A DNA stretch of 64,000 bases from Adineta vaga (lineage: Eukaryota > Animalia > Rotifera): contig CP075492.1 of assembly GCA_021613535.1 (NCBI GenBank), positions 16,120,001 to 16,184,000 of the forward strand, in the 5' to 3' direction. Below, in pieces: positions 34,477 to 46,101 of the stretch. The notes under the pieces were generated by a model that had not been told where the DNA came from, did not search any database, and saw only the letters and a program-made list of their open reading frames with translations. A program made the translations under genes and the position numbers. Every line of letters starts with the position of its first letter. The stretch's first letter is position 1.

Positions 34477-36392
34477 ATGGATATGGCAAACAGCACAAAA
34501 CAATGTTTCAAATGTCTGAAATATAAAAAAATTACAGTCCTTTGTAGAGGATGTTCAAAAGAATTTTGTCTCGCAGATTTACATGAACATCAACAATTAT
34601 TAAATGAAGAATTAAATGTTGTTATCAATGATTATGATCAATTTAGACAAGGAATAAACGATCGAAAACAAAATCCATTAAATCATTCGTTGATCGAACA
34701 AATTGGTCAATGGGAAACAAATTCAATTCAAATTATTCGACAAACAGCTGAAAAATGTCGACAAAATGCTATTGAATATTCGAGAATACATTTAAAAGAG
34801 ATCGAACACACGTTAACCGAATTAGGTGAACAAATCAAAGCAATTCAACGAGAAAATGAATTCAATGAAATTGATTTGAAGGATTTAAAAAGAAAATTAA
34901 ATAAAATGACCGAAGAACTGAATCATCCATCAAATATTTCAATTGAAGAATATAATCAAGGATTTATTATTGAAATTTCAGTAATTTCAAGAAGGAGTAA
35001 GTTGAAAGTTTTGAATTCTTATTTTATTGAAAAGAAAAATTGATTTTAAACTCATGCCTAAACATTTAAATTTTCTAATGAAAAACAAAAAGACAAGTGA
35101 AATTAATATAACATGAAATTCATAACGACATTCAATTATTTTCTCTGTGATTCAATGTAGTTTTATGTTCTTCATTCGAACGAATAAGAGAAACTTCGAT
35201 ATTTCGTATCCAAAATGGCAAAATAACTAAAAAAACATCATTTTTAGAGAGATTAATTTAGTCTTTGTTATTTAATTCAACGAGTAAAACTAATTTCTAA
35301 TCTTTTAACATTTGTCTTTATCCTTAGAATTTAGTTCAATTAGACATTTATAAGATGATGGAGAATTAAGTAAAGAGAGAATTAATAGATATGCTAATGT
35401 GCACTTATAAATGCAAAAGAGAATCTTTGATTTGTTCCATCAATTTCAAATTTTCGTTTGATTAAAAAACGAACTTTTCCTTTTCTTTGTTTAGAAACGA
35501 AATTTCAACAAAATGGAAGAATTGTTGCTGGAGGAAATGGACAAGGAAGTCAATTAAATCAACACTCTAGTCCTCTCAGAACCTTTGTTGATGAAAAAAA
35601 AACCATTTTCATTGCTGATTGTTCGAATCATCGTATTGTTCAATGGAAATGTAATGAAAACAAGGACAAATCATTGCAGGTGGAAATGGAAAAGGAAATA
35701 GAATGGATCAATTGACTTATCCGACAGATGTGATTGTTAATCAACAAAATCATTCAATCATCATTGCTGATTGTATGAATAGACGAGTGATGCGATGGTC
35801 ACGAGATCAAAAACAACAAATTCTCATTCAAAATATTCGTTGTTATGGTTTAACAATGGATCAACATGGATTTCTTTATGTTTCTGATCATGAGAAGAAT
35901 GAAGTGAGAAAATGGAAGTTAGAAAACATTAATGAGAACAAAGAAGGAACATTAGTTGCAGGTGGAAATGGAAGAGGAAATCAACGAAATCAACTCGACT
36001 GTCCTACTTTCATCTTTGTTGATAAAGTTCAATCTGTTTATGTTTCAGATCGAGATAATCATCGTGTGATGAAATGGAGAAAAGATGCGAATGAAGGAAT
36101 TGTTGTGGCTGGAGGAGATGGTCAAGGAAATAATCTCAATCAATTGAATTCTCCTCATGGATTGTTTGTTGATGAATGGAATCAAATCTATGTGGCAGAT
36201 TGTGGGAATCATCGAATAATGCGATGGTATGAAGGAGATAAAGAAGGTTCAGTTATTGTTGGTGGAAATGGTCAAGGAAGTGAATCAAATCAATTGAATA
36301 GGCCCACTGGTTTATCATTTGATTTTGAAGGAAATCTTTATGTTTCAGATTCTGGAAATAATCGAATCGTTCGATTTGATAAAATTTATTGA
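34477..36392 (+). pseudogene. B-box/coiled-coil + NHL gene, copy 2 (frameshifted)
   Basis: Exon 1 34477-34996, exon 2 ~35495-36392. One A is missing at ~35660 relative to copy 3 (gaaaacaagg vs gaaaaacaagg), splitting the ORF. Confidence 0.8.
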
Positions 36393-37934: not shown

Positions 37935-38354
37935 ATAACGTGCAGTCAATGTTTTCCGCTCTCAACAACTCAACGACAGTTGCCTTTTGTTCGAATAAAC
38001 GTTGTGAAAGTTTCATTTGATTCTCAACGTGTTCGTTGATGTGATGCTGTTTCGCTTGTATTTTTATTTTTTGTTTCCTCGCATTAACAGTGAGCGAGAA
38101 ATAAGTTTGCTACTCGCTTCGTGCATCAGCGAAAAGAAAAGGACAACATTCTTTTGTTTCACTATTCACCATAGTTACTTATGAATAAAGGTGTGCTTCG
38201 CTCGCTTCTTTATTCACCTTATAATGAAACAAAGACATTTTAGCAAGAGAGCATTGAGTTCAAAATTTCTAATTCTAATGTGACAGAAGTGATGATCTGC
38301 GCGAATGGTACGTCTGACAGCAATTATATTAATAATTTGTAGACGTTACTTTTC

Positions 38355-38729
38355 ATGTATCTGTGTAGAGAATTGATGCGAATGATCGCTAACTACCTTC
38401 ATAAAATTTCACCGTCTTCAGACGTTTCTTACATGCTCTACAAAGTGCTTGACTACACCCGACAAAAAATTCACAAGCATGTGAACATACGAGTAATTTC
38501 AGATAATGAAGTCGTTTTAATTCTAAGAAAATATGAACCAGTTGTCAGCTTAAATGATGCTTCATCTAAAAACGCTCTATTGCCTGTCATATATGAAATT
38601 CACCACTGGGAATATTTGTGTCGAAAAGCGTCATGGCATGAAAGTAGTGAGAAAAAACATTGCACCACAACATTGGAAGGAATGTGCGTTTTTAAGTTTA
38701 TTCGTTCTCTTGCTTTTGGCGAGAGGTGA
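38355..38729 (+). CDS. Uncharacterised ORF/exon upstream of the nuclease gene
   Basis: 124-aa open frame preceded by a TAG acceptor-like site; no domain recognised. Confidence 0.35.
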   Translation: MYLCRELMRMIANYLHKISPSSDVSYMLYKVLDYTRQKIHKHVNIRVISDNEVVLILRKYEPVVSLNDASSKNALLPVIYEIHHWEYLCRKASWHESSEKKHCTTTLEGMCVFKFIRSLAFGER

Positions 38730-38836
38730 GGGTGTATATATACTTTAACATATCGCAACAAAACTCATCTCATTCTCTTTGATAAACACAGAAATAGTTT
38801 TATACAAAATCTCGATTCTCAACAGCAATCAATACA

Positions 38837-40752
38837 ATGGCCACTGGTAAGGAAAATAATATTGATATGGATGCTGATGACTACGAACACTTTTTACCGT
38901 ACTATCTCTACGTCGGAAATCATTTGGAACAGTACTATCAGGAATACGTAAAGAATCACGGGGATCCTCAAACAGCAGTTTCGTTACAAGAGACCGAACC
39001 TCAGGACGAGCTCTCTCAACCTTCTTCCGAAACATCAGAAGGTCATCCCACACCACGTCAATTCGAAAAGATGTGTTACGCCACTGCAGGTCCAGCCTGT
39101 GAACGTCTTGCAGCTGAGACTCGCCAGAATGTCAAACTGATCGAGCCAAGAACAATACATACGTACCGTTATAAGGATGCGAAGACAGGAGAAATGGTGG
39201 AGAAAGGTATTAAACCTGACATGATTATAGCGTTCAGCCATGATGGCGTTAGGGGTAAGAATGTCGTTGTCGATGCAAAATCACACAAGGGCGCTATACA
39301 AATGTCAGACTATCGCAAACTAGACCGAGATCGAAAAGTGACAAAGGTAAGCAAGTTTGAAATATCCGGGGAAGACAGTCGGCTTTGATGTTCTGTGGTA
39401 GAATAATTTTCATGAACTATTTGTTTTAGTCCTCACATGCTATTCTTTTTATCAACACAAACAGTAAATTACCAAAGTCCGTAGAGGAAGCAGTTGAAGC
39501 CGATCCACATATGAATATCATTCGGTACAACGGTGAACAGCCCAATGCTACTTCAAGAGAATTTGTCGACAAAGTTGGTCCTCATGTAAGTGGTTCCGAA
39601 TTCCGAGCAGACGATCAGCGTTACGAAAATAACAAACAGTACGTTGATCAGTCTGATCTTAAGAAACAAAAATATCCGAATCCTCTCGGTAAACAGAACA
39701 GTGAACTAACTAAGAACACACATCGCCATTTCACTGGTTACGACTTTCGGCATCCCCGCAAGCCAGATGGCTCGCTAGATAGAGATCAGGCGGTGAACGA
39801 AGGTTTGAAAGAAGATGGAACGCTAGACATGCGTCTCAACGAAAACAAGAATGTTGAACAAGTGGAACAGCATCTCACACAGGCAGGTGAGCCAGATATG
39901 CGTTTTGCTGAAAACAAGAATGTTGAACAAGTGGAACAGCATCTCACACAGGCAGGTGAGCCAGATATGCGTTTTGCTGAAAACAAGAATGTTGAAGAAG
40001 TGGAACAGCATCTTACACAGGCAGGTGAGCCAGATATGCGTTTTGCTGAAAACAAGAATGTTGAACAAGTGGAACAGCATCTCACACAGGCAGGTGAGCC
40101 AGATATGCGTTTTGCTGAAAACAAGAATGTTGAAGAAGTGGAACAGCATCTTACACAGGCAGGTGAGCCAGATATGCGTTTTGCTGAAAACAAGAATGTT
40201 GAACAAGTGGAACAGCATCTCACACAGGCAGGTGAGCCAGATATGCGTTTTGCTGAAAACAAGAATGTTGAAGAAGTGGAACAGCATCTTACACAGGCAG
40301 GTGAACCAGATATGCGCTTTAAGGAAAATCAGGAGGCAGTGGCATCTGCGGAAGCTCAAACAATCGATAGTGGTGGTGAGTTTTCCTCTGATATGTTTTA
40401 AATGTATGACAAGATAGTTTTTTTCCGTTAAATTAGAAGAAACTGTAGCTGAAGTTGGAATATCGTCTGGTAGTGGAGAAGGGGACGAACACCTTAAAGC
40501 CGATGGTACTCCTGATATGCGATATAGCTCCAACAGAGAAGATATAGCAGAGATGGAAGAAACTGAAGATATACCAGAAATGAATGAAGGTTTGTACAGT
40601 TTTGTTTTTGAAATTCTCTCAAAACCGCAAAACCTCTCTGTTTCATAGGTATGAGTACAATGAGCCTTGACGATGGCGGTGCGGATAGTGCTGGTGATGG
40701 ACCATTAAAAGCAGATGGTACACCTGATATGCGCTTCAGTGCTAACCAGTGA
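38837..40752 (+). CDS. PD-(D/E)XK (Mrr/restriction-endonuclease-like) nuclease with C-terminal GxPDMR repeats, 4 exons
   Basis: Introns 39347-39429, 40376-40436 and 40590-40648 splice in frame; TGA at 40750-40752. Motifs QFEKMC, KPDMII, VVVDAK, then a helix and HAILFINT strand. Seven 23-aa repeats plus KPDGSLDR, KEDGTLDMR and two KADGTPDMR motifs. Confidence 0.75.
39826..40320 (+). repeat. Coding tandem repeat, 7 x 69 nt, with 138-nt higher-order period
   Basis: gaaaacaaga recurs every 69 nt (39841, 39910, ...). Variants run Q,Q,E,Q,E,Q,E with linked synonymous ctc/ctt changes. Confidence 0.95.
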
Positions 40753-40992
40753 AGGAGCCGCTTTGTCGTGATAATCTTTTGCTGTTGGTTCTAGCATTCT
40801 TCATTCGAGAAATAAATTTTTAAGCTTATATATTGTAATTTATCTAATAAGTAAAATCTTTTTCAGTGTCTAAACGTGTGTGGGCCTGATTTTGCTAGGA
40901 AAAAAGGTAAACCGTCCAGAAGCCATACAGTTTCACTATCAATTTAACGAGGAGACTTACACAAGCGTTCTAACCGTTCAGACCGCATCGTT

Positions 40993-41079
40993 TCTTGAGG
41001 GTGGGTGAGGGTGTGAGTGTGGGTGTGGATGTGGGTGCTAGACAGTTGCAGTACACCCACACCCACACCCTCACACCAC
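40993..41079. repeat. Telomere-like head-to-head junction J6
   Basis: TCTTGAGGGTGGGTGAGGGTGTGAGTGTGGGTGTGGATGTGGGTG / ctagacagttgcagta / CACCCACACCCACACCCTCACACCAC. Confidence 0.9.
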
Positions 41080-41914
41080 GCTTTTGATTCATAGTGTTAA
41101 ACTAAGTTCACATTAGATTTTTTTCTTTTTTAGTTTATTAAATTGTGTTCAATCTATTTAAGAGATTTATTTATCGATATTCCAATGTTTTCTTTTTTTA
41201 AATATATTAAGGAATATTGAAAAAGAACAAAAAAATATTTGAATTCGTTTTCAATCTATCAGTGTGAATCAGAATGATCATAAATATCAAAGAAGAAATA
41301 AATTCATCGATTAAATGTCAAGATTTTGACACAACAGAGTTTACAAAAAAAAGATTTTTATTGTGATAAAATCATTTTAATATATGGAAGAGTGTTGAAA
41401 TCGGTCAATTAGTGTAAGGATTAGGGCATGAAAGATACACTCTCAACCTGGACTTAGGCTCAAAAACTTGAGAATGTCGATTCGACCGTGTGACTCGAGT
41501 TATTCGAAACAATAATTACAAAACGTTTCTTTTATTCCCGTAAAAATAGGCGAGTTGTAAAATTTAATTATCACTTATGCACAACCCTCTTCGTTTAAAT
41601 TGAATATTTGTAATTCAAAGAGATTTTTCAAGCGGTTGTTCCCCCCATCGCTATATCTATATGTGGAAAATGATCGAATAAGTCTATTAAGTCGAATTTG
41701 CATTTTATTTTGTTTCAGATAATTTTTCAACAGTGAAGATATGTTTTCATGATAAAAAGGAAAAGAATCAAATAATAGTAAAAAATATGACTCAACCATC
41801 TTTATTTTCCAACATATTTCGTTTCTTATCATTATTGACTTTCGAGCATTTTATTCTTATCTTCATCAACATGAATCTTCCCATTTTCAGTTTTAAAATT
41901 TCTCTTTCCTACCG

Positions 41915-43791
41915 ATGGATATGGCAAACAGCACAAAACAATGTTTCAAATGTCTGAAATATAAAAAAATTACAGTCCTTTGTAGAGGATGTTCAAAAGA
42001 ATTTTGTCTCGCAGATTTACATGAACATCAACAATTATTAAATGAAGAATTAAATGTTGTTATCAATGATTATGATCAATTTAGACATTCGATAAACGAT
42101 CAAAAACAAAATCCACAAAACCATTCATTGATCAAACAAATTAATCAATGGGAAATAAATTCAATTCAAAGAATTCAACAAACATCTGAAAAATGTCGAC
42201 AAAATATTATTGAGCATTTCAAAACATCTCTTAGAGAGATCGAACAAAAATTAAAGGAACTAAGTGAACAGATCAAAGCAATTCAACGAGAAAATGAATT
42301 TAACGAAATTGATTTGAATGGTTTAAGAGAAAAACTAAGTAAAATGACTGAAGAACTGAATCATCCATCAAATATTTCAATTGAAGGACATAATCAAGGA
42401 TTTATTAAGGAAATTTCAATTGTTTTATCAGATAGTAAGTAAAAATAAAATCATCGAATCTTTATGTTTTGAAAACTTATTAATAAAAATTTTCTTTGAA
42501 TTACTTTCTACATTAGATAATTCGCAATTATCATCAACAAATCATTTTAACAATTTAAAAACGAAAACTTCACCTGTTCAACAAAAAAGTAAAGTTTCTT
42601 TATTTTTCTTGGAAGCGAAAACGAATTCTTAAATCAAATGTTTCAATGAAATAATGAAGAAATCTCTCAATTTCATTTCTTTTTCAATTTGATCACGAAG
42701 ATTTTCTCATTCTCATTATCTTTTTGTATAAATTTCTTTCGAAAAACGTTTCAACCCTTAGTTTTCATTTCCATCTTTTGAAATCACAAATCACTTATTA
42801 TTCAGAACAAAATTCGTTTCTATTAAAACAACCCTTATCAATTTTTCCTTTTTCCCTATAGAAATTTTTGTATTTTTCTCTTCATTTTCTAGAATCAATA
42901 TTTCAACAACATGGAAGAATTGTTGCGGGAGGAAATGGAGATGGAAGGCAATTAAATCAGCTCTCCAATCCTTATGGAATCTTTGTTGATGAAAACAAAA
43001 TCATTTTCATTGCTGATTGTTCGAATCATCGTATTGTTCAATGGAAATATGATGAAAAACAAGGACAAATCATTGCAGGTGGAAATGGAAAAGGAAATAG
43101 AATGGATCAATTGACTTATCCGACAGATGTGATTGTTAATCAACAAAATCATTCAATCATCATTGCTGATTGTATGAATAGACGAGTGATGCGATGGTCA
43201 CGAGATCAAAAACAACAAATTCTCATTCAAAATATTCGTTGTTATGGTTTAACAATGGATCAACATGGATTTCTTTATGTTTCTGATCATGAGAAGAATG
43301 AAGTGAGAAAATGGAAGTTAGAAAACATTAATGAGAACAAAGAAGGAACATTAGTTGCAGGTGGAAATGGAAGAGGAAATCAACGAAATCAACTCGACTG
43401 TCCTACTTTCATCTTTGTTGATAAAGTTCAATCTGTTTATGTTTCAGATCGAGATAATCATCGTGTGATGAAATGGAGAAAAGATGCGAATGAAGGAATT
43501 GTTGTGGCTGGAGGAGATGGTCAAGGAAATAATCTCAATCAATTGAATTCTCCTCATGGATTGTTTGTTGATGAATGGAATCAAATCTATGTGGCAGATT
43601 GTGGGAATCATCGAATAATGCGATGGTATGAAGGAGATAAAGAAGGTTTAGTTATTGTTGGTGGAAATGGTCAAGGAAGTGAATCAAATCAATTGAATAG
43701 GCCCACTGGTTTATCATTTGATTTTGAAGGAAATCTTTATGTTTCAGATTCTGGAAATAATCGAATCGTTCGATTTGATAAAATTTATTGA
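41915..43791 (+). CDS. B-box/coiled-coil + NHL-repeat protein, copy 3 (intact)
   Basis: Exon 1 41915-42434 and exon 2 42893-43791 are in frame. Confidence 0.88.
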
Positions 43792-44222
43792 GATGAACTT
43801 TGCATTTTAAACGTAAGGATTTGATGAAAAACGATTTTTGTCAAATTGAAATGAAATTTGGTAGAAGAAATGTTTGTTAAATCAAAGATTTTGTTTTGTT
43901 TTCAAATCAAATCTTGAAAATTTCTCAAAATTTGTCAATAAACAAATGAAGTGAAATTGATTTTCGAAGATCTTGAAAAAGAAAAACAAAACAATCGAAG
44001 AAAAAAAAAATTAAAAATGTTGTTTTCTTCGAATCAAAAATCCAGAATAGAATTTGAATTTATTTTCTCAATTAGTTAATTGATCATTTTTATCGAGAAA
44101 TCATTGAATCCGTTTAACAAGAACAAAAGAAATTGTCTCATCTTCAGAGATTCTTTGTTGATGAAAAGAAGAAGAATTTTGATATCTGGACAATAAAAAT
44201 GCAATTAAAGCACAATTAACCA

Positions 44223-44272
44223 TCTTGAGAGTGGGTGCGAGTCAATTTCTCTATCCACCCACACCCTCAACA
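44223..44272. repeat. Short telomere-like head-to-head junction J7
   Basis: TCTTGAGAGTGGGTG / cgagtcaatttctctat / CCACCCACACCCTCAACA. Confidence 0.8.
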
Positions 44273-44828
44273 CGAAAAATATGATCCTATTGATCAGAAT
44301 CAAGAGTAAAACATTGAATACTATGTTGAATTCTAGATAAAATTAAACGACAGAATCTGTTGAGTATTGTATTATCATGTTCATTTGATAGATGGTGTAA
44401 AAGTAATGTGTCGAGCCAATCTGTCAAGTTTTCTATTAACCCTCAACTAAAAGGAGGATCCTATGAAAAAAAATTGTTAGTAAACAATAGAAACCAAGAG
44501 TAGAGCGAGAAAATATTGCTTGGCCCTTTCTCAACGCAGATTATTGGGGTATGATATTAAAATCAGTCGGGGGTTATTGATTTTTATAATTCTCAAATAA
44601 ATATTCTACATTGAAAGGATATGTATGAATGTCTATACTCATTCATCACTCCCAGTTCCGTTCTACCCATGACGTTAATTATACTGGTCCAAAAAAATAT
44701 TTCAATAATCAAACCTCCTTTCATTTACCTTTTTTCTTCCTTTATAGAAATTTGTATTGCGAAGGTCTAGAAATCTACGCCTATTTCTTTCTCTTTTGAC
44801 ATCGTTATTTGAATTCAACTAAATCCTG

Positions 44829-46101
44829 ATGATTCACAACTATCGAGCAATAGTCAGTTCAATTATCGTGATTGTTTTCGTTGAAGCAATCTATTATATG
44901 TACAAAACTGATAATAGAATATGGTTCAACAATGATTTCAATCTCTTCAAACAATCGACATCAACAAATAGAACTTTTGTCACTTCAATAAAACATATCA
45001 TTCATGTGAGTAGGTAATTTTAAAGTTTCACTTATTCATTATGTTTTTATTCAATTTTATTAATAGATCAAAGTAACGTGAAGAATACTACTTCTACTAA
45101 TGGAAGCATGATGTCGAAGCCAAATACAAATGAAGAATCTTATCAAACATCTACCTTGTCATCTGTCTCCCCACACTGTAAAACTTCTTCAATAAACAAT
45201 AATTTGAATATAACATCGAACTATCGAGTTAATGTAACAAAAATTCTGTATTCATTTGATGAATTAGAGAGCCAACATGGTTCTGATATACATATTGGTG
45301 GTCATTGGTATCCATTGAATTGTCTTGCTAATCAACGTCTTGCTCTCATTATTTGTTATCGTCAACGTGATCAACATTTACGAATCTTTTTAAATCATAT
45401 TCATCCCTTTTTAAAAGAACAACAACTTGATTATACAATCATTGTTGTTAATCAAAATGGAAAAGAAAAATTCAATCGAGGAGCTTTATTCAATGTTGGA
45501 TATATTGAAGCAATTAAACTCTATTCATTTAATTGTTTTATATTTCATGATGTAGATTTATTACCTGAAGATTCAAGAAATATTTATCAGTGTCATTCTC
45601 TTCCACGACATATGTGAGTAAAACTTATCGATCAAACATTTTCCATACGGATTTATTAGGTCAGTAGCAGTGGATAAATTCAATTATAGATTGTTGTATC
45701 CGACATTATTTGGTGGTGTAACTTCTTTTCATATCGATGATTTTGTTCATGCTAATGGTTTTCCAAATGTCTATTGGGGATGGGGAAATGAAGACGATGA
45801 TATGTACTTACGTGTTACGAAGAGATTGAAGAAGAATATCACTCGTTATCCAATCGAAATCGCTCGTTATCAAATGATTCGAACACATGGTCATAAATCA
45901 GGTATGGTGAATCCTTATCGAGATAAACTTCTTCGTTCAAATTATGATTTCGATCTCGATGGTTTGAATACAATACGTTATAATCTTCATCAAGTAACAT
46001 TACATCGTTTATTTACTCTTATTAACGTTACACTTTTCGAAGAGACGTACGAACAAATTCTTATTCGACTGAATATTACACGTAAAGAGAAACGAACATG
46101 A
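44829..46101 (+). CDS. Beta-1,4-galactosyltransferase / GalNAc-transferase (GT7)
   Basis: Type II TM anchor. Motifs YRQR.QHL, FNRGALFNVG, FHDVDLLP, FGGV and NGFPNVYWGWGNEDDD. Two introns. Confidence 0.93.

Follow-up and report, generated by a model that had tools for sequence, protein, structure and literature searches.

The window analysed here is a stretch of 64,000 nucleotides from the genome of the bdelloid rotifer Adineta vaga (G000:C3:16120001-16184000; the host genome comprises 100.8 Mb in six contigs), and our subject is a four-exon gene that it carries on the forward strand at positions 38837 to 40752. This is a spliced, expressed host gene that is conserved in relatives of the rotifer, and residues ~70-207 of its product form a divergent Mrr_cat domain of the PD-(D/E)xK type, with a complete catalytic set and under strong purifying selection. 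The tail of the protein is a fast-evolving array of a conserved motif of 17-18 residues that is found across kingdoms and lacks annotation. As the best explanation of these observations we propose, with a probability of roughly 60%, that the product is a nuclease of the Mrr_cat type with a multivalent motif-docking tail, that its gene is a single-copy host gene from a bdelloid family, and that the junction of telomere-like repeats lying nearby is incidental to it.

Standalone PD-(D/E)XK nucleases of the Mrr type are mainly prokaryotic and, to our knowledge, rare in animals. Here such a nuclease is found in an animal, in a gene that contains introns, is expressed, evolves under strong constraint and belongs to a set of several diversified paralogues. 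Bdelloids are known to survive massive DNA breakage, and they use DNA methylation of a bacterial type; an Mrr-type gene with these properties in such a lineage therefore offers a concrete candidate for an enzyme of DNA processing or defence, a role that is predicted. The motif in the tail is common, almost letter for letter, to secreted proteins of Bacteroidota, phage proteins and invertebrate signalling proteins, and a census of this motif together with its binding partner could define a new short adaptor module.

A spliced host gene with an Mrr-type nuclease domain

The coding sequence is 1713 nt long (570 codons plus the TGA), and all three introns have GT..AG borders. Splicing was checked by comparing four public runs with positions 38600-41000; these runs exist as contigs, from which presence and splicing can be read and expression level cannot. 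In the transcript-type contigs, which come from three runs of three different studies, exactly 83, 61 and 59 nt are skipped at the predicted borders, and introns 2 and 3 are retained in a DNA run (X8). The transcript-type contigs cover the locus from about 38674 to 40810-40881 and cross the stop codon into the 3' untranslated region (3'UTR). An earlier reading of the DNA letters, made without database searches (the sequence-only reading), had proposed a gene with three introns and with a GC content above that of its neighbours. All three joints were seen in transcript-type contigs exactly as predicted, and the difference in composition was borne out by measurement: the gene has a GC content of 0.42-0.49 and a GC content at third codon positions (GC3) of 0.24-0.41, compared with 0.30-0.34 and 0.17-0.18 in four neighbouring open reading frames (ORFs), its GC3 being about twice theirs. 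In the host genome the gene is present as a single copy, together with one divergent paralogue. The parts of the locus, with window positions and strand, are as follows (aa, amino acid positions).

38674-38836, +: 5' untranslated region with an approximate start; spliced transcript-type contigs of three runs start at 38674, 38695 and 38719, and the ATG is at 38837
38837-39346, +: exon 1, aa 1-170; the N-terminus (aa 1-69) is poorly conserved, and the remainder encodes the initial two thirds of the Mrr_cat-like domain, with E77, D128 and D146-A-K148
39044-39540, +: Mrr_cat-like PD-(D/E)xK nuclease domain, aa ~70-207, split by intron 1; from hhalign, Pfam and the fold of the paralogue
39347-39429, +: intron 1, 83 nt, GT..AG, phase 0; joint in contigs of runs X1, X10 and X13
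39430-40375, +: exon 2, aa 171-486; remainder of the nuclease domain, conserved linker (F-x-x-D-D-Q-R-Y-E, P-N-P-x-G) and motif tail
39841-40320, +: tandem array, 69 bp x 7, with the 23-aa unit NKNVE(Q/E)VEQHLTQAGEPDMRFAE; Tandem Repeats Finder, 97% matches
40376-40436, +: intron 2, 61 nt, GT..AG, phase 1; joint in three runs, unspliced in DNA run X8
40437-40589, +: exon 3; one motif copy (HLKADGTPDMRYSSNR) within an acidic linker
40590-40648, +: intron 3, 59 nt, GT..AG, phase 1; joint in three runs, unspliced in DNA run X8
40649-40752, +: exon 4; last motif copy GPLKADGTPDMRFSANQ, then TGA
40753-40881, +: 3'UTR with AATAAA at 40811-40816; transcript-type contigs extend beyond the TGA, their ends being at 40810, 40819 and 40881

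The protein was analysed through spliced public models, namely P0016 (I4U23_022847, the paralogue on contig C5), P0024 and P0033 (I4U23_016071), the first 570 residues of the last being exactly the product of the window gene. Its catalytic residues follow the order E77 ... P127-D128 ... D146-A147-K148, with the Mrr-like spacing that the sequence-only reading had pointed out, and this set is unchanged between paralogues of low identity (29-35%). In 18 sequences of the family, drawn from three or more paralogue groups, conservation of E77, D128 and D146-A147-K148 is complete or reaches at least 90%. Mrr_cat is the top Pfam match for every family member tested; P0024 reaches 30.4 bits (E 4.6e-7), above the 21-bit gathering threshold, and other family members score 14-18 bits. 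Single exons matched no nuclease family in Pfam and NCBIfam, exon 1 alone did not match Mrr_cat, and a six-frame scan of the genome with Mrr_cat gave zero matches.

For a profile-profile comparison, seven spliced family domains were aligned (A7) and matched by hhalign against 21 bacterial Mrr_cat segments taken from genomes, each above the Pfam cut-off (A8); the two profiles align with 94.4% probability (E 8.4e-8) over 110 columns, covering template positions 3-114 of 119. In this alignment FE(K), (P)D and x-K, that is, E77, D128 and K148, fall on the invariant E, D and K of Mrr_cat.

The predicted fold points in the same direction. AlphaFold2 (AF2) modelled the complete domain of the paralogue (P0016:50-215) with a predicted local distance difference test score (pLDDT) of 85.4 and a predicted template modelling score (pTM) of 0.82, and the window domain aligns with this folded domain over 165 residues at 30% identity (BLASTP E 3e-23). 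The model has an alpha-beta-beta-beta-alpha-beta core, its elements being ordered helix, three strands, helix, strand, helix, strand, helix; as expected for PD-(D/E)xK enzymes, the first helix carries the E, the second strand opens with the D, and the third strand holds D-x-K. The best Foldseek matches to the model are MspJI, EcoT38I, Cdn1, AF1548, PaqCI, FokI, AspBHI, Avs3 and Hjc, and a second-look aligner (VIA) gave Z scores of 8-11.3 to Can2/Card1-type proteins, PaqCI, AF1548, McrC, AspBHI and MspJI. Among the matches listed, 50 of 50 from VIA have a restriction-endonuclease-like fold, as do nearly all top Foldseek matches. An ESM feature search with the domain returned weak leads (0.88-0.91), all inside the PD-(D/E)xK clan, and a sequence search of the Protein Data Bank (PDB) with the full-domain profile found nothing significant. 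Taken with the Pfam match of a family member and the selection described next, these comparisons bear out the Mrr-type PD-(D/E)XK domain that the sequence-only reading had proposed; it had named another fold, or catalytic residues that vary among homologues, as what would speak against the domain, and neither was found.

Selection was measured against an orthologue on a 130-kb contig of another Adineta-like genome (L005), at a synonymous divergence (dS) of ~1. The ratio of nonsynonymous to synonymous substitution rates (dN/dS) is 0.05 in the domain (aa 70-170), 0.28 in aa 1-69 and 0.20 in the part of exon 2 outside the array; the low value in the domain fits a constrained active site. The N-terminal 69 residues are 46% identical to those of the orthologue, their predicted structure is of low confidence, and they matched no family in Pfam or NCBIfam, including the Mrr_N winged helix.

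Compared with Mrr_cat as known from E. coli Mrr and Type IV enzymes (PF04471), the rotifer domain has the same PD-(D/E)xK core, the same E ... D ... x-K order and spacing and the same C-terminal strand-helix-strand, but D-A-K takes the place of the Q-x-K of Mrr. E. coli Mrr also carries the Mrr_N winged-helix reader of modified DNA, which the rotifer protein is without, whereas the rotifer gene is eukaryotic and intron-bearing, encodes a long motif tail, and belongs to a family of which no member was found in bacteria. Likewise, MspJI, AspBHI and AF1548 (PDB 4f0p, 4oc8 and 1y88) match the paralogue model with Foldseek E values of 2.5e-4 to 7.5e-3 and VIA Z scores of 8.5-10.0, but they carry an SRA-like or other DNA-reader domain that is absent from the rotifer protein, and identity is only 6-17%. 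The fold is shared, too, with nuclease effectors of prokaryotic immunity (Can2/Card1, Cdn1, Cap4 and Avs3/Avs4; top Z up to 11.3). By analogy, the rotifer protein may follow the same logic, a generic PD-(D/E)xK effector being coupled to a distinct module for targeting or sensing; it has none of their sensing modules (CARF, SAVED, STAND NTPase), and the corresponding partner would be an array of short linear motifs.

A candidate identity as a designer pentatricopeptide repeat (PPR) protein, which came from a PDB search with the exon-1 profile (E 1e-21), was rejected as a chance match through EMVEKGIKPD. This peptide (window 39170-39210, aa 119-128) happens to resemble the designer PPR consensus, and weak Pfam PPR matches were seen as well.

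The motif tail in rotifers and beyond

The tail spans ~300 residues and contains 10 G-x-(P/L)-D-M-R motifs plus one degenerate copy, DGSLDRD, giving 11 copies, seven of which lie inside the 69-bp x 7.0 array. The sequence-only reading had counted about 11 motifs with seven in a homogenised array, and its count stands. In register, the array units follow the order A-A-B-A-B-A-B' and are 0-2 bases apart, A differing from B at two bases and the last unit at seven. The strict coding pattern DG[ST]PDMR[FY] has only three matches in the entire 100.8-Mb genome, two in the window gene and one in the paralogue; since the pattern is confined genome-wide to these two genes, the motif is not a product of chance. 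Over 29 distinct copies from five loci the consensus is (Q/E)-H-L-(K/N)-x-D-G-(T/S)-P-D-M-R-(F/Y)-x-(E)-N-(K/R/Q). The last 17 residues of the protein, in exon 4, are identical between paralogues that are ~30% identical, and this C-terminus is identical in the orthologues too.

The size of the array varies widely. Orthologues have one or two such array units instead of seven, and the L005 orthologue has three motif copies at a spacing of 171 nt. A third paralogue, on an environmental Adineta-like contig (L008:4557-6800), has 26 tandem units of 22 residues, DGSPDMRT(A/T)ENRD(A/D)QLPPGENV, which is an independent and much larger expansion of the same motif, and the 69-bp array of the window is itself a recent, lineage-specific expansion. 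Tandem duplication changes the size of the array quickly between lineages, with the motif itself held constant.

The Pfam matches of the array to FdsD (55 bits), DUF7618 and Psb34 were rejected as spurious, being made by the repeat. Those to FdsD and DUF7618 lie above threshold, which is of practical importance for annotation, and the FdsD match has passed into the precomputed annotation of the public protein.

The motif, written as GPLK(K/A)DGTPDMR(F/Y)xxN(K/R), is covered by no Pfam or NCBIfam model, and in a literature search for the motif strings no paper containing them was found. The sequence-only reading had suggested a search with the repeat motif, and our searches place it in proteins of other animals, of Bacteroidota and of phages. 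A search with the paralogue tail returned many BTB-BACK proteins of 777 aa, one of them labelled Porites evermanni (P0061), as well as a protein kinase of Ptychodera flava (P0032), a second kinase (P0073) and a WWE-domain protein (P0098); in 67 of the 75 matches a motif copy forms the end of the protein. The coral BTB-BACK proteins, the two kinases and the WWE protein have the same motif 2-10 times in low-complexity tails, usually with a copy at the very C-terminus as in the rotifer protein, but their catalytic or adaptor domains are different and none is joined to a nuclease.

In species-representative bacterial genomes a degenerate DNA pattern for KDGTPDMR[FY] matched at least 120 loci, against a chance expectation of ~1 locus, which is an estimate from the degeneracy of the pattern and 596 Gb on two strands. 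Nearly all titles among the matches listed are Bacteroidota. For the 120 loci listed (of at least 120), the median open frame is 116 aa, the N-terminus resembles a signal peptide in 114 and two or more motif copies are present in 94, a typical copy being GP(L/T)KKDGTPDMRYKxNK; no conserved neighbour gene was found at these loci, the best cluster comprising 12 of the 120. The repeats of these small Bacteroidota proteins (KKDGTPDMRYKxNK) are nearly identical to the rotifer motif, including the flanking G-P and K-x-N-K, but the proteins are only ~90-160 aa long, with a signal-peptide-like N-terminus, 1-5 copies, K/T-rich linkers and no enzyme domain. Small secreted-looking proteins of this kind (L011-L130, e.g. 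L014, L020 and L039) fall outside the Pfam and NCBIfam families. Eleven IMG/VR contigs (L131-L141) also carry the motif, several of them in virion-type ORFs of 550-2200 aa, one of which matches the T5 tail-completion protein p143; two membrane-protein-like ORFs on these viral contigs end in RLKKDGTPDMRYYNGKN.

Two Bacteroidales proteins (L046:6087-6635:+ and L048:2692-3168:+) combine a signal peptide and one KDGTPDMR with a C-terminal peptide of the PBCV_basic_adap type, which in L048 scores 23.6 bits against a cut-off of 20.4; a single protein thus holds two distinct short peptides of the adaptor type. The PBCV-specific basic adaptor domain (PF08789) is likewise a very short module found on different enzymes, but its sequence (TGPRGGxYYxxxxGxKxY) is another and it does not match the rotifer tail; as an identity for the motif it was rejected, since the peptide matched in L048 is a different one. 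An HNH-like C-terminus of L098 was noticed by eye and was not confirmed by Pfam.

How the nuclease and its tail may work

Judging from its residues and fold, the domain would be a Mg2+-dependent DNA endonuclease. Because the winged-helix DNA reader of bacterial Mrr is absent, the enzyme is probably aimed or regulated through its tail, which is predicted to be of low complexity and is likely disordered. As a multivalent handle, the tail would tether the enzyme to some conserved partner or ligand, and the occurrence of the same motif on kinases, on BTB-BACK proteins of the Cul3-adaptor type and on a WWE protein in other invertebrates provides a context for this idea.

Several observations weigh against the proposal of an Mrr_cat-type nuclease with a docking tail. 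For the domain, the window product itself (P0033:60-240) scores 15.9 bits with Mrr_cat (E 0.015), under the 21-bit threshold, and AF2 on window exon 1 alone gave a poor model (pLDDT 49), the good model belonging to the paralogue. For the tail, an ESM feature search returned nothing, the signal peptides of the bacterial carriers fit poorly with an intracellular docking role, and the copy number of the array comes from one assembly only, because short-read contigs break inside the array.

A broader idea is possible, although we hold it only tentatively: KDGTPDMR may be an undescribed, portable adaptor peptide by which, across kingdoms, effectors of widely differing kinds are tethered to a single conserved ligand or hub. 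If so, its carrier in bdelloids would be an Mrr-type nuclease; in cnidarians and hemichordates the carriers would be kinases, WWE proteins and BTB-BACK adaptors of the Cul3 type, and in Bacteroidota and their phages they would be secreted and virion proteins. The bdelloid proteins would then represent a new class of nuclease effector in eukaryotes, serving immunity or DNA processing, and rapid tandem growth of the array would adjust how many docking sites each protein offers.

The tail could instead bind nucleic acid, as the sequence-only reading had proposed: its basic/acidic DGxPDMR motifs would contact DNA, RNA or a polymer such as poly-ADP-ribose directly, and what the nuclease gained from them would be avidity for nucleic acid, not attachment to a protein. 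This would suit a nuclease without a recognisable DNA-reader domain, as well as the joint occurrence of the motif with a WWE (poly-ADP-ribose-binding) domain in P0098 and its presence in K-rich bacterial and phage virion-type proteins. We nonetheless consider it unlikely: the rotifer tail, with its E/D/Q/N-rich units, is net acidic to neutral and not basic, no nucleic-acid-binding family was matched in Pfam or NCBIfam, the bacterial carriers have signal peptides, and the motif occurs on kinases and BTB-BACK adaptors, which need no binding of nucleic acid.

Slightly less probable still is the view that the domain is no longer an enzyme, having become a scaffold or binding module like the NACHT-associated inactive REase or the N-terminal domain of Rpb5, with the whole protein acting as an adaptor. 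The sequence has diverged far from Mrr_cat, non-catalytic folds of the Rpb5 type are among the structural matches, and NA-iREase1 (PF22722) is a weak second Pfam match on P0024 (E 0.01, 16.3 bits against a cut-off of 27). An active nuclease accounts better for an E...D...D-x-K set that is invariant or nearly so in all paralogue groups and that aligns with the invariant residues of Mrr_cat, and for the dN/dS of the domain, which fits a constrained active site.

Family range, neighbourhood and the public gene model

The second family member in the genome, at 3.52 Mb on C5, shares 29-37% identity with the window gene as well as the exon-1 boundary and PD...VDAK, and ends in a tail with divergent DGxxDMR motifs. 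In word searches with exons 1 and 2, the only matches were ORFs for individual exons, 65-80% identical, in metagenomes and rotifer assemblies. With a profile of the exon-1 domain, HMMER was run exhaustively over 1.84 billion representatives and returned 10 proteins at E <= 1e-3, and the named sources are all bdelloid: A. vaga, A. steineri, A. ricciae, Rotaria sp. Silwood1 and Silwood2, and Didymodactylos carnosus (assembly GCA_905250885.1; Table 1, PMC7943196). The position of intron 1, after ...T(K/Q/R), is common to every readable locus (L002, L005, L006, L008, L009 and L010), and the family comprises at least three paralogue groups with this one common intron position. The family is thus old within bdelloids, because Adineta, Rotaria and Didymodactylos all carry it and share the intron, and it has so far been found there only.

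A literature search found no paper linking bdelloids with Mrr. The sequence-only reading had described the gene as a domesticated foreign nuclease. The Mrr-type domain and the spliced gene are borne out; as to foreign origin, a bacterial donor did not appear in the exhaustive HMMER search, bacterial Mrr_cat being reached by profile-profile comparison only. Foreign ancestry is plausible only from the prokaryotic bias of Mrr_cat and from the raised GC3 of the gene.

Downstream of the gene, and outside it, lies a junction of telomere-like repeats.

40993-41077, no strand: TCTTGAG anchor, G-rich telomere-like tract (40999-41039), 13-nt spacer and C-rich tract (41053-41077)

The stop codon ends at 40752 and the TCTTGAG starts at 40993, a gap of 240 bp, which is the distance that the sequence-only reading had given. 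It had also raised, as a speculation, a link between the gene and such junctions, and this link found no support at related loci. In the 17 kb read around the L005 orthologue, anchors and telomere tracts are both absent, and the C5 paralogue has none within +/-10 kb.

It is very improbable, in our view, that the gene is a cargo or accessory ORF of an Athena/Terminon retroelement, or that it is functionally tied to the TCTTGAG/telomere-repeat junctions by making or processing breaks. The closeness of the anchor and its telomere-like tract to the stop codon would favour such a connection, as would the presence in the window of 10 anchors of the TCTTGAG(G)GTG type against 0.43 expected, along with several telomere-like tracts; Penelope-like elements, moreover, retain introns. 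However, the genome has one copy of the gene and one paralogue that is 30% identical, and the gene is therefore not multicopy, and positions 40860-40999 are likewise single copy in the genome. The L005 orthologue keeps both the gene and the nearby gene of the beta-1,4-galactosyltransferase-like (GT7) type in a region free of anchors and tracts, as is the surrounding of the paralogue. The transcript has its own AATAAA and ends 110-180 bp short of the anchor, and an Rfam search of 38000-45000 found no hammerhead ribozyme, the only matches being sub-threshold, miRNA-like and placed on the telomere-tract hairpin. Membership of an Athena/Terminon element is largely refuted by these results, and the junction is best read as a lineage-specific rearrangement scar whose proximity to the gene is incidental.

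The G-rich and C-rich tracts (40999-41077) face each other over the 13-nt spacer, so that a hairpin is possible. In a 2013 DNA run, contigs end with telomere-like letters at 40868 (C-rich, before) and at 40960 (G-rich, behind), which may represent the structure of the junction in another haplotype or strain.

Least credible of all is that the gene is the 5' half of a fusion with the downstream GT7 gene, as in the GenBank model I4U23_016071 (P0033, 842 aa), which joins aa 1-570 to a Glyco_transf_7N/7C part (window 45078-46076): the transcript-type contigs of three runs cross the TGA and continue 60-130 nt into the 3'UTR with no joint, an AATAAA follows the stop codon, the GT7 gene of L005 is inverted with an actin gene between, and the paralogue and all orthologues end in ...PDMRFSANQ-stop. 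Because of the transcript contigs, the polyadenylation signal, the inverted synteny in L005 and the conserved stop after ...SANQ, the current model looks like an annotation artefact, a false fusion that matters in practice to users of the public protein.

In the window, the equivalent of the actin interval of L005 is a junction-bounded block with an NHL-repeat ORF. Two NHL-repeat ORFs with very similar patterns of Pfam matches flank the nuclease gene, at 35703-36389 and 42868-43788, and the downstream one lies in the block bounded by the anchor-like sites at 40993 and 44223/44262.

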